Shown one piece after another: positions 54,895-63,226 of a stretch of DNA of 64,000 nucleotides (its first letter is position 1; every line of letters begins with the position of its first letter). The notes beneath the pieces were generated by a model. That model searched no databases, was not told where the DNA came from, and was given only the letters and a program-made list of their open reading frames with translations. The DNA comes from Calcarisporiella thermophila CBS 279.70 (lineage: Eukaryota; Fungi; Calcarisporiellomycota), in contig NW_027192195.1 of the NCBI RefSeq assembly GCF_041956535.1, forward strand, positions 1,020,287-1,084,286, given 5' to 3'. Made by a program: the position numbers and the translations under genes.

Positions 54895-55313
54895 TTTCTC
54901 CCCTCCCCCTCTCTGCCCCTTTGGCCCCTTATTTATTGTCGCCAATATTTATTATAGTATCCTATATAAATAGTTTCTATTTACTGTATAAATCCTTGTT
55001 TACTTTTTTATATTCTACTCGCCGTTGGATGTGTCTCGCCCTTTCCCTGTCCCATTTCGTATACCTCCTATTTATCGATATATGGGCGTGAGTGTCTTTG
55101 TTTTTAGCTCCATCGAACCTTTCTGGTAAAAGAGAATATCTCTAAGTAGTGTTATTTTTTTTTCTTTTCAATAAACTAACATATACAAAGTATAGTTAAC
55201 AAAAGAAAATCATATAAAAATATATATATAGTGAGAAGAAAAAAAAAACAAAACAGAAAAAAAAAACACAGCTCATTAATGATTAGAAAGCAACACAATA
55301 AATATTAAACACT

Positions 55314-56402
55314 CTATGTGAGATAAAGTTTATTCTCGTGGATATAATTGATGACTGAGTTGGGGAGAAGATACCGAATGCTCATGCCGCGCTTGACAAA
55401 CAGGCGGACACGTGTGGAGGAAATGTCGTTGTAGATGAGCTGCTTGATGACAAACACATTCCGGCGGTGCTCATAAAGAATATCGTGTGAGAGAAGGAAT
55501 CCCCAAACGTCGGATCCGGTGCGTTCTACGATGAGGCAGCCGTAGTCGCGGAGGATGTGGTGAAGCTATCAAGGATTAAAAAGGGGGGGGGAGGAGGGGT
55601 GGGGGTGAGGCTTCAGTGAACCGTAGCTTGTTGAAGCTATGGAGGACTTACATCTTGCGGGTCCCATACCCCAGGATGGCCGAAGCTCTCGATCAAGTCC
55701 CCACCAGCCAAGAGCATGATCTTTATCTTTCGCATTTCTCCATCCACCGTGAGGATCCCGCCCCCCTTGATGTTCAGCTCTTCGTCAAAATGGTCCAGCG
55801 AGACGGCAGTGCGTTGATATTGTTTCTGGCGTGCCTCCCAGTTGTCGACCATAAGCCAGTCGGAGGTCTGGGCAACAGCCAATTCGCACATATTAACCCG
55901 ATGATGGGCGGGGGCAAGGCCCTCTTTTTTATAAGCATCGCTAACAGGGGAGTAGTAACCCCCAATAATTTCGAATTCTGGAACATTCTCCTCAATATAG
56001 TCTCTTGCCATTTCTAATAGAAGAGTAGACAGGAGTGTTAATTCGATGATGAAGCGGAATTAAAGTGAAAGGACATCCCCGTGGGTCGAATAATTTACCA
56101 AAGATTCTCAAGTGAAGATAGGTTATAGGTGAGAATGATCCACATGCCACAATCACCAGAGGCACCTTGCTCGCATCTAAATCATCGTTTTGACAGGTGT
56201 GAAACCGACTTCCGCCATTTCTAATCATCATTAATCGCATTTAGTGGATACCTTTCATGACCTTTCGCAATCTACTCCGCGGAAACTCGTACTCTGACAA
56301 CTGAAAATTATGGTAAAACATCCCATTATGGTCTTTACCATTCGCATCAATAATTAAGGATGAAGGACAATCCGCTAGATCGTTGAACTTTTCAAGAAGC
56401 AT
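55314..56402 (-). CDS. NMA1: Nicotinamide/nicotinate mononucleotide adenylyltransferase
   Basis: VACGSFSPITYLHLR, YSPVSDAYKKEGL, WLMVDNWE, MLLAGGDLIESF and NDISSTRVRLFVKRGMS. Confidence 0.95.
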
Positions 56403-57242: not shown

Positions 57243-58084
57243 ATGACAGCAGGATTAAGAAGTAAGCAAACAGATTATAAAACACTGTTGCAATGGACCT
57301 GACTAATATTCTTCGTTTTGCCTGCTGCAATCACTTTTGAATTCAAAAGCGTAAATAAATTTCATCAAGATGTCTTTTTAGATGCTAATACTCAATGTGT
57401 CCTTTTCTTTCCATTAGAATCATCACACTTTCATTTGTGCTGGCATGTGGATTTCTACTCGTCATTCTCTCCTGCGCATTGTACAAGTAAGTCGAAATAT
57501 TGTGAATTCTTAAATTTTCTCTTGTAATAACCTCTTCTCCCACCCCTGTCCAAAGTAACTGGTGGCCACTCTTTGTCAGTATGTATTATTATTGGCGATG
57601 ACTCTTTCTTCTTACTTTTTGAATTCCTAATCATGTCATATATCTTTATATAGTCGGGACATACGTGGTTGCTCCTATTCCCAATGCAGTCTGTGCCAGG
57701 TGCGGAGGAAGTAACGATATTATGTCGGATGAGTCCAAGTATGGACCTATATTTTATCGCCTTGCTCTATATCTATTGTTAATGGTTTGAGGGCCCTTGC
57801 CTGCTTTTCTTTATTAGCACTGGCTTGCTAGATCTTGGGCGTTTCCTAACCGGCATCCTCGTCATGACCGGATTCAGTCTTCCGTTCGTATTGGCACATG
57901 CAGAAGTCATATCCATCCCGGCCATGATCATGAGCATTGGGGGCGGGATCTTGGTGTATACAACGAGTGAGTGATTGTGCGAGATGCTTGCTCCTAGAGT
58001 AAACTCTGGTGCTAACTCTTTCTCCCTCTTTGCGCAGTCATCACCTACGGAAAATTCTTCGCCCAGGAGGAGGACGAATTCTAA
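57243..58084 (+). CDS. VPS55: Vacuolar protein sorting 55 (LEPROT family), about 7 exons including a 1-nt exon at 57350
   Basis: The spliced product is MTAGLRTIITLSFVLACGFLLVILSCALYNNWWPLFVIGTYVVAPIPNAVC..DLGRFLTGILVMTGFSLPFVLAHAEVI..MSIGGGILVYTTIITYGKFFAQEEDEF*. Confidence 0.92.
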
Positions 58085-58927: not shown

Positions 58928-60305
58928 ATGCAACAGCCAGCGGATGTCCCGTCTGTAGGGCACAAGCGAAAACGTAGCTCCAATAACTTGAAGGTGTCAA
59001 CAACCACGCCAGTCGGGTCCTCAGCAATCGAGAGCCCGCTTATATCGCCCCAAAATGCATACGAATATCTAGAATTCAACCTACCAAAGCCGCCAGAAAA
59101 CCTGAGCGGTGAGGCCACAAGAACTCCACCCTATAGGGGATTGCCCGCCTTTCTGAGTAAGCTGTACAGGTGAGGCATTGTTGATCGGTCTCCTCTTTGG
59201 CTAGCCCTACCTAATAAGTTATATATTACTAGTATGGTGACCGATGCATCGACCGATTGTTTTATAAGATGGACGGAGACTGGGACTTCCTTTATCGGTA
59301 TGTTTTGGATTGCTTTGACTATTAAGGGCTCATGCACTTATCCTCAATATAAGTTACCAACCCCGATGAATTCGCCCGCGTGTTGCTTCCCCGCTATTTC
59401 AAGCACTCTAACTTCTCGAGCTTCGTCCGCCAGCTAAACAAGTACCATTTCCACAAAGTCCCTCATCTGCTTATCGACGAGAATTCCAGCGAAACCTGGG
59501 AATTCAGCAATCCCAACTTCATGTCCGATCGAATAGATCTTCTATACTTTGTGCCGCGGAAACGCGAAAATAGCTCGAACTGGGCCGTTTCCCGCTCCGG
59601 CGCAAGTGGTGGAGAAACGAGTGAGATGGAGTCCTCAATGCTCAAGGATGGAATCGAAGTATCTCAAAGCCTCCAATCGAATCTCCAGAGCGAGCTACAT
59701 ATGGTAGAATGCGAGAACCATGCGCTGTGGAATGAGATTGATACCCTGCACAAAAAACACGCAAGCCAACAGGCCAAACTCGATAAAATCGGGAATCTCT
59801 TGGAGATGATATTCTCTGCTGGGGTGCAGTCGGTCTCTTCCCAATCCAGTTATTATTGCTCCCAGATGGAGCGCATGTATGAGGCGGCGAACAAACAGCG
59901 TGAATATAAAGTGAGCGAGGGGATGGAGGGACGAGATACCATTGCGGCAGCCCCGGTGGAAGGCCTACCGATCGTGCCTTCGTTGGCAAGCACCCCATCC
60001 CATTTCTCCGAGTCATCTAGTTGAGTAAAGCAAACTGTTTGTTCATCCGACATGAGTAGTTTTATCTAACTCTTTTATTTCTTCTCCTCGAAGGTTCCTT
60101 TCCGACCCCTATTTATCAGCCATTTAGTCAGCTTACTCCTTCTAGTCTCGACGCAGCTTCCTCCTCGCACGGGGACAACAAGCCTTCTCAGTTGAAGATC
60201 CCGACCTCCACTGCGGATACACTCTGTGCTCCTTTTGAAAATGTATTCAACCTCCCGTCCTGCAATGGAGAGAATCTCTGGCCCCCAGCATTCCCATCGG
60301 GCTGA
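58928..60305 (+). CDS. HSF-type DNA-binding transcription factor
   Basis: PAFLSKLY|..[11 protein letters not shown]|..[33 protein letters not shown], then a coiled coil. The last exon (60094-60305) is inferred. Confidence 0.88.
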
Positions 60306-60785: not shown

Positions 60786-63226
60786 TTATTGCTCCTGCTC
60801 TGTCAACAAATCGCCGAATAGCTTTGTTTGGAGCTCCTCCAAACTGACATGTAAAATATCGGGAAAGTCTTTGACTTTACTCGTATGTGGGTGTTCCGCA
60901 AAGCCGGAACTACCACGTATATAGACAATACGAAAATCTTCATCTTCTTTACCGTCCCGAGTGACAATAAACCTCCTGGATTCAGGGTCGATTATAGCTT
61001 TATAACAGCCGTTGCCATCTCTATGTTCGTCACAGCCGCCAAATGCGCCATCCAAATATTTTTCAATTTGGTTTCTTGGATCAAAAGAGCGCGTGGGTCT
61101 AGGTTTGGGATATTCAAAAGCTTTCTCGATATTCGCTGAATTTTGGTTGTGTATGGTAAATTCGGAGATAGATGTTCGAATAAACATGCGCCCAAGGATA
61201 TAATCAAATCGAGGGTACCCAGGGTAGCATCGCAGCAGGGTATTATCTCTAGTCTTAAAGGGAGGATCTCGAAGCATCCTGAAATGTTTAAATTTGATGA
61301 CAACTGGTACTGCTTGATTACCAGCAAGGTCAGTTGCATTAAGAGTTACTTCTGGGTGACGCAATAATTGCTGGAATAGCACGTCCTCAAATTGTAGCCC
61401 AGTCATGTTACCACTTGTGATGGCTAAAGCAGCATCTCTGGGGAGCGGCATTGCCTTATAAATATCGAGGAGAGCACCTTTGGCGGCTTGACATAAAGGA
61501 CGATATTGCACACTGCCTCGGACCTTGAGCCGATACACCAGTCCGAGGTCCATAAACTGATAGTCGAAGTCTTGGTAGTTGAATCCGGGATCACCTTCTT
61601 TTCGGGGAAGAAACATAGCAGCAAGAGCATAACGTTGGGCATGCTGTTGAATAGGCTTGAGATCTTTGTGAAAATATTTATCTGCAATCTTGAAAAACTC
61701 ACGACGCCGATCTTTCTTGAATTGCTTTAATAGGCTCGAAACTTGATCGGTAGTCGCTGTGGTTGCACTTAAGGTTTCCGATATAAACCCTGCCATGTTT
61801 ACGAGCTCACGCGGAACATTATTTGTGATCTCCTTCACTTGGCTTCTGATCTCTAAGTTTGATAGAATAGGACTCATGTCCAACAATTTGTCGAAGATGG
61901 TATCAGATAGAGGAGTGACAAATTCCAGCCAATGCATCATGCCATTTTTAAGATATTCTCTCTCAAATTTTGCATGTGCCGTGCCCGTCAAGACAACCCG
62001 TGTCCCTCTCCTTTCTTCATTCCACGCGGTAAGCTGCATCAGAGGGTTAAGAAGTGGCTGTGTTTTGGGTATTGGCGGCTCCTGGTCAAAGAGTGCACCA
62101 TGTTCATCGACAACCAAGAGAGTTTTCTTTTCCAGTTGGTTGAGTAGATCACCTAAGATAAAGTGAGCCGCACGAGAGACTACTTCGTCCTCTTCAGTGG
62201 GATGCCCGAATGTCATCACTCCGAAGTCAGCGATGGTCAAAATATCTTTGTTAAGGGCTAGAAATCGCTTGCAAATCTCTTCTGCTATCTTGATAGGATC
62301 TTTCCAGGCCAATCTGCTCGCATCCGAAAAATAGAGTAAAAGCCATCCATCGGCATATGCTTTGGCAGCAAGGAAAAGCGCAAGATATGATTTGCCGACA
62401 CCCATAGGACCTGATAGAACTCTTTTGATTGAATGGCGGCTATCTTTTTGAAGCTCTTGCCACAACTCCATCATCTGCTCGGTGACTAGAAATGACATTC
62501 CCTGGTAGCCCTCTCCATAATGCTTGGGCTCTTGACCAAGTGAAGGTAGTTCAATTTGCTGGCCGACTTGTACATTGTCCAGTTGCTGCTTAAATTTTTC
62601 GCGTGACGCAGGTGTGAATTCTCCACTATCAAGCATACTGACCAACATAGGCGGCAAGTCCACAGTCCCATCCTTGGCGTTGTATTTTACCCAGTTATCT
62701 ACGCGGACTTTCTTTGAAACGGGCTTTTCCTCTAATGTTGAATAAATAGAATAAGTGATATGTGGAGGTATTCAATAGAGGATAAATTCAAAAAAGAAAA
62801 TTTATGTGCATAAGTCCGTCGCGAACGTAAGTAATATAAAATGTGAGCACTATTTACCAGTAGCAGCTGGTGAAAGAACAGAAGATGAATAAGCCGACAA
62901 ATAAATATAAATATAATGTTAGAAAGAGAGCAGTTAGTAATAGGGACAGTAGTGGCGATAAAAACGATGCAGTAATGCCATTGCGGTCACGAGCTTTAAC
63001 CGTGTTAAATACATACCAGGAGCAATCGTGTTAATCAAACGAATGAAACGCCGAATATATGCCACCTTATTCTCAGGCAGTTTATAAAATTTTAGAAAAA
63101 ATAAAACAGTTGATATTTTGGAACTATCCTCCGAGAGATGGACAGAGAGAATCTCCATTTCATCCTCTGTCAAATTTAACCCTCTGAGTTGGTCAATAAG
63201 CTCGATTAACTCTTGCTGAAGTTTGT
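60786..63226 (-). CDS. Crinkler-like P-loop NTPase with a C-terminal restriction-endonuclease-like domain (5' end uncertain)
   Basis: Walker A VLSGPMGVGKS, Walker B LLVVDEHG and C-terminal GLQFE..YPRFDYILG. An upstream exon at 63226-63017 splices in frame to 62731. Confidence 0.75.

Follow-up and report, generated by a model that had tools for sequence, protein, structure and literature searches.

A one-nucleotide exon in the VPS55 gene of Calcarisporiella thermophila and its counterparts in other eukaryotes

The VPS55 gene of the fungus Calcarisporiella thermophila raises a question of reading frame: how can its first coding exon be joined to the next large exon when the former ends in phase 1 and the latter needs phase 2? 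The gene lies in a window of 64,000 nucleotides (contig NW_027192195.1, positions 1,020,287 to 1,084,286 of the forward strand). An earlier note, made from the sequence alone, had proposed that the single C at position 57350 is an exon of its own, possibly a very ancient one that is missed by gene predictors. The gene structure, its homologues and the competing explanations are examined here in turn.

Gene structure and protein of the VPS55 locus

The exon and intron boundaries proposed between 57243 and 57486, as well as the phase conflict, hold on re-reading the sequence (Table 1). Direct joining of exon 1 to exon 3 was claimed to shift the frame, and skipping of C57350 indeed leads to a 69-aa nonsense product. 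With the C included, A+C+A gives ACA (Thr) as predicted, the frame is restored, and the seven-exon model provides a 393-nt coding sequence with no internal stop and a normal stop, which encodes an intact Vps55 of 130 aa and normal length. Both introns are complete and carry the branch-site-like motif that had been claimed for each of them, and the AG at 57349 and the AG at 57417 are each the first AG 3′ of their own CTAAT. Their lengths are in line with those of the other four VPS55 introns (69–79 nt). The AAG acceptor of intron 1 and its branch motif, 43 nt upstream, are both somewhat weak; intron 3 (69 nt, upstream of exon 4) likewise ends in aag.

Table 1. Coordinates of the VPS55 features in the window
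Feature	Positions	Strand	Remarks
Coding exon 1	57243..57261	+	19 nt; MTAGLR and base 1 of Thr7; ends in phase 1
Intron 1	57262..57349	+	88 nt; gtaagc..aag
CTAAT in intron 1, branch-site-like	57303..57307	+	putative branch A at 57306; function suggested by the motif
One-nucleotide exon, C	57350..57350	+	middle base of Thr7 codon ACA; AG-N-GT conserved in homologues
Intron 2	57351..57417	+	67 nt; gtaaat..tag
CTAAT in intron 2, branch-site-like	57385..57389	+	putative branch A at 57388; function suggested by the motif
In-frame ATG within intron 2	57395..57397	+	start of the public model (MCPFLSIR...); not conserved
Exon 3	57418..57486	+	69 nt; first transmembrane segment; needs phase 2
Exon 4	57556..57578	+	23 nt; NWWP motif
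Exon 5	57654..57738	+	85 nt
Exon 6	57818..57966	+	149 nt
Exon 7	58038..58084	+	47 nt including the TAA stop

Enumeration of all frame-keeping GT/GC-AG joins revealed only three single-intron and two other two-intron options, and every alternative join depends on a non-consensus donor. Only by including C57350 can strong splice sites yield a full-length Vps55 in the normal register. The frame could in principle be restored by a single 152-nt GC-AG intron (57266-57417) or by another weak donor, giving MTAGLRSKII..., and three such in-frame joins do exist. Nevertheless, their donors (gcaaac, gttgca, gcaatg) bear little resemblance to the consensus and follow closely on the strong gtaagc; at 67–88 nt, the other introns of the gene are only about half as long, and the product would exceed the family register in length. 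A second VPS55 copy in the same genome would need yet other weak donors (gttgtt, gttttt, gttatg), while no single join works in Anaeramoeba (see below). We give this explanation very little credence. Still less can be said for a pseudogene or for a base lost in assembly as the source of the phase conflict, a practically negligible prospect given that the paralog and separately assembled genomes of many other species show the same conflict with an AG-N-GT inside.

The annotated C. thermophila protein, VTP21DRAFT_9542, is 100% identical to our model over residues 8–130, begins at the ATG within intron 2 and misses both exon 1 and the one-base exon. Such a start, on a transcript that retains or begins in intron 2, might be right or might co-exist with the seven-exon form: the ATG shares the frame of exon 3 and no stop intervenes, it is used by the NCBI model (P0227), and intron-retaining isoforms occur in plants (PMC8831610; moss contig L025). 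However, it has T at −3, compared with G at −3 for the ATG at 57243, and it leaves the well-matching MTAGLR exon unexplained. Moreover, an in-frame intronic ATG is absent from the paralog, Phycomyces, Gigaspora, Piromyces, Dictyostelium and Anaeramoeba, and that of Benniella is unrelated. We therefore regard it as very unlikely. Judged from the sequence evidence, C57350 is almost certainly a real and required one-nucleotide exon of an ordinary Vps55 gene.

The protein itself is an ordinary member, of about 130 aa, of the Vps55 / OB-RGRP (LEPROT) family (PF04133), and only the gene structure is novel. Three exons searched singly (3, 5 and 6) match Pfam Vps55, with 56.7 bits for the exon 6 region and 28.5 bits for the exon 3 region against a cut-off of 24.6 bits; the searches were made with single exons or database proteins, and the joined models were assembled separately by script. 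Residues 3–130 align end to end with Mucoromycota members at 60–68% identity. According to PMC13133770, yeast Vps55 and Vps68 act together in endosomal sorting.

The neighbourhood of the gene comprises a divergently oriented cytidylyltransferase-like (NMNAT-type) gene at 55300-56240 (−) and, downstream, an HSF-domain gene at 59234-60024 (+). A 625-aa uninterrupted ORF at 60786-62663 (−) shows a weak P-loop NTPase match (DAP3/AAA/NACHT-like); we assume that its product resembles Crinkler-type proteins of early-diverging fungi. GC content is 0.50–0.67 in the part of the window from 22001 to 46000 and 0.37–0.50 in much of the remainder.

The split codon in other fungi, plants, Dictyostelium and Anaeramoeba

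The second VPS55 copy of C. thermophila is located on another contig (C7, from 469441 downward, minus strand). It is intact, with 129 residues and 8 introns, and shares 60% amino acid identity with the copy in the window. A 16-nt exon 1 is followed by tag-C-gtaagt in the same Thr codon, the one-nucleotide exon being at C7:469301, and the introns flanking the C measure 124 and 107 nt. Intron similarity between the two copies was not above that of shuffles.

Four further lineages of fungi also have this codon split by a one-nucleotide exon: Phycomyces blakesleeanus (C, Thr), Gigaspora rosea (C, Thr), Benniella (T, Ile) and Piromyces finnis (C, Ala). Exact spliced alignment with the split-codon residue left free recovered the exon by itself in each of the four, exact splicing in Piromyces being possible only over the first 30 residues. 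The public models at these four loci have Ser, Gly or extra residues, or have lost the N-terminus. For arbuscular and rumen fungi, short transcript-like records carry Thr or Ala at that residue, while the genome models have patchwork N-termini. The first exon measures 16–25 nt in all homologous loci with the micro-exon. The GTRAGT donor that was described as a plant trait is present after the micro-exon in the paralog, Phycomyces, Gigaspora and Piromyces and absent from the window copy (gtaaat); it does not serve as a test of homology.

Other fungal relatives lack part or all of this arrangement. Spizellomyces, Hyaloraphidium and Cladochytrium (chytrids) and Amoeboaphelidium (an aphelid) have no intron in the codon and keep the same register, and the intron-free homologues of Spizellomyces and Hyaloraphidium are of the same length with Thr at the site. 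In Vanrija, the phase-1 intron alone is retained. These loci provide a reference for the length of the protein and indicate that either or both introns can be lost.

In plants, the VPS55-1 gene is known to contain a one-nucleotide exon in phase 1, validated by RT-PCR in Arabidopsis, with blocks of 19, 1 and 52 (Yu et al. 2022, cluster 2; PMC8831610). The exon is present in Zygnema as well, and has been framed within microexon gain during plant terrestrialization (PMC11096116). The profile searches with Vps55 returned no named plant protein among the matches listed, and plant loci were found by a short degenerate DNA pattern built on a supplement primer, the NWWP motif and one Met codon. The statement in the earlier note that plant VPS55 has such an exon is borne out by the publication and by the plant genomic and cDNA contigs, in which it falls in the same alignment column. 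All 12 plant genomic loci have cag-T-gtrag ahead of exon 3, with a fitting 19-nt exon 1 in nine, and three fully spliced cDNA contigs encode Val7 as G-T-G or G-T-A. Plant Val7 aligns without gaps to fungal Thr7, in one and the same column. The check that the note had suggested, for AG-N-GT at this codon in early-diverging fungi and in plants, was thus positive in Phycomyces, Gigaspora, Benniella, Piromyces and the 12 plant loci.

The plant cluster and the fungal gene have in common the family, the size of one nucleotide, phase 1, a 19-nt first exon and an annotation that misses the exon, and in both the split codon precedes the IL of the ILxC motif by 16 residues. The block pattern of the window copy (19, 1, 69) agrees with that of cluster 2 (19, 1, at least 52). 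They differ in base and residue, C (Thr) in C. thermophila and T (Val) in plants, and a conserved intron-retention isoform like that of plants is not evident in the fungi.

In Dictyostelium discoideum AX4 and in a second assembly, a 19-nt exon 1 is followed by tag-C-gtaaga, giving Ala7 in the exact family register. The public AX4 model appears to be mis-spliced at its N-terminus, taking an AG farther downstream and lacking three residues (L105:964, L106:973). Models of Vps55 from related Dictyostelium have lost up to 18 residues.

Anaeramoeba ignava (Metamonada) is the best test, as both a genome and a transcript-derived protein exist. The genome reads C|gtaaaa, tag-A-gtaatt and aag|A, which gives CAA, and the transcript-derived protein (EukProt, P0376) has Gln8 at the split codon. 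No single-junction join of any dinucleotides reproduces the N-terminus of this protein, while exact GT-AG alignment yields a one-nucleotide A exon. Together with the other groups, the match to Gln means that the exon base tracks the residue: C with Thr or Ala, T with Val or Ile, and A with Gln. The same gene contains a 1770-nt intron (L110:1257-3026) that consists largely of an AT-rich short tandem repeat.

How often would such a motif arise by chance? In the window interval, YAG/AAG-N-GTR at least 40 nt from both ends occurred in 1.8% (loose) and 0.7% (strict) of dinucleotide shuffles, which alone is modest evidence; the cross-species evidence is decisive. The motif is present in 11 of the 11 phase-conflict intervals tested (Anaeramoeba was added later), and the strict form was met in 0.7–23% of shuffles per interval, rates whose product is only a guide, given the relatedness of the loci and the choice of the strict pattern with the data already in view. 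Within an ungapped block of plant, fungal, Dictyostelium and Anaeramoeba sequences, the two introns occupy a single column. The position of intron 1 is common to plants, Dictyostelium, Anaeramoeba, Vanrija and five other fungal loci; in animal LEPROT genes, the corresponding codon presumably carries a phase-1 intron too. Another three intron positions of VPS55 recur in fungi and in either Dictyostelium or Anaeramoeba, which is what one would expect of a gene that is old and rich in introns. Resolution in the Vps55 tree is poor: neither the age of the paralog nor the number of gains and losses can be read from it, and it shows only that the sequences from plants, Dictyostelium and Anaeramoeba do not fall within the Mucoromycota and Dikarya.

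Age of the exon and its splicing

Taken together, these comparisons suggest that the one-nucleotide exon of VPS55 is very probably homologous with that of plants and ancient. Of the earlier proposal of a very ancient conserved exon missed by predictors, both halves find support: the exon recurs in four more fungal lineages, Dictyostelium, Anaeramoeba and plants, and the public models examined miss it. Both introns would already have been in the codon in an early eukaryotic ancestor (at least that of plants, Amorphea and Metamonada), with both later kept, one lost (Vanrija) or both lost (several chytrids, an aphelid).

The rival explanation is that only the phase-1 intron is ancient, and that plants, fungi, Amoebozoa and Metamonada each acquired the second intron, one base downstream, on their own or through duplication of a splice site. 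The phase-1 intron does stand alone in Vanrija, and sampling is thin, with one amoebozoan genus and one metamonad. One-nucleotide exons, which the earlier note had called extremely rare, are moreover not very rare in intron-rich fungi, so that this description needs tempering; 13 are recorded for Coprinopsis cinerea (PMC12230235). Repeated origin nevertheless requires about four independent gains at one exact nucleotide, and the flanking exonic bases vary (A|C|N, G|C|N, G|T|N, A|T|C, C|A|A), such that no shared proto-splice site is evident. Intron loss is common in Dikarya and chytrids, which also counts against it. While somewhat less far-fetched than the rival structures for the gene itself, repeated origin appears improbable; with four major groups and other shared introns, common descent is strongly favoured over parallel gain from the sequences compared.

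Common descent with presence in Archaeplastida, Opisthokonta, Amoebozoa and Metamonada would place the origin in the last eukaryotic common ancestor or close to it. The exact distance hinges on where the eukaryotic root lies and on groups such as SAR and Discoba, the sampling for this ancestry being of plants, fungi, Dictyostelium and Anaeramoeba. [quoted passage not shown]

How might such an exon be spliced? It was argued for APC11 of Arabidopsis that an exon of one nucleotide is too small for spliceosomes to assemble simultaneously on both sides (PMC4674806). In VPS55, two short canonical U2-type introns flank the base, and each could be recognised across its own length by intron definition. 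They would be excised in succession, probably starting with the downstream intron; with such stepwise removal the spliceosome would never have to define the exon. Sequential removal, as the earlier note had suggested, is supported by plant intermediates: in five plant transcript-like contigs intron 2 and the following intron are removed and intron 1 is retained. This fits downstream-first removal, or alternatively stable retention isoforms. For C. thermophila itself, we infer the order of removal from the layout of the introns.

In early land plants, a regulatory role through intron retention was described, and the N-terminus of VPS55-2, like that of bryophyte isoforms, is derived from the intron (PMC8831610). 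Moss-like contigs (L025, L015, L066) have an in-frame N-terminus from inside intron 2 (MADCGAYG...), which resembles the intron-derived start of plant VPS55-2 (cf. PMC8831610). When intron 2 is retained, translation ends immediately behind the split codon at each of the eight loci compared; the stop follows from a GTAA or GTGA donor in phase 2 and hence is no evidence of regulation. The fungal loci lend no support to retention-based regulation, and their intronic start codons are not conserved. The intron pair most likely persists because of its location, 16–25 nt away from the start codon, a region in which introns are seldom lost; in addition, a point change in either inner splice site would shift the frame of the gene.

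Known one-base exons and significance

One-base exons as a kind are already known. In Arabidopsis APC11 (Guo and Liu 2015, PMC4674806), a different gene, a one-nucleotide exon follows a 19-nt first exon as in VPS55, with a putative branch point about 44 nt upstream, and stepwise removal by intron definition was proposed. APC11 of C. thermophila (C7, approximately 927863-927690, minus strand) has the layout of the plant APC11 cluster, with a 19-nt first exon, tag-G-gtaaaa and Ser7, the one-nucleotide G being near C7:927762. In CYP621A of Fusarium, one base between canonical introns is likewise the middle base of a codon and required for the frame, and the exon is reported from Fusarium only (PMC12940212). 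No cross-supergroup conservation is reported for the CYP621A or Coprinopsis exons in the accessible portions of PMC12940212 and PMC12230235. For VPS55, no report of the exon outside streptophytes was found in the openly searchable literature, by which subscription journals are largely uncovered. By its alignment position, the VPS55 exon of C. thermophila is the counterpart of plant cluster 2.

One-base exons have so far been treated as lineage-specific curiosities, and the present comparison would shift the origin of the VPS55 exon to near the eukaryotic root. Vps55 N-termini would be corrected in many public models, including those of D. discoideum AX4 and C. thermophila. Dictyostelium and Mucorales offer tractable models for the order of splicing, and for whether the exon is kept by selection or for want of a safe route to its loss. 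Together with APC11, VPS55 may represent a small class of primordial one-nucleotide exons just past the start codon, whose two-step splicing is possibly a control point. An exon of this age would imply that the ancestral spliceosome was already able to remove two introns one base apart.
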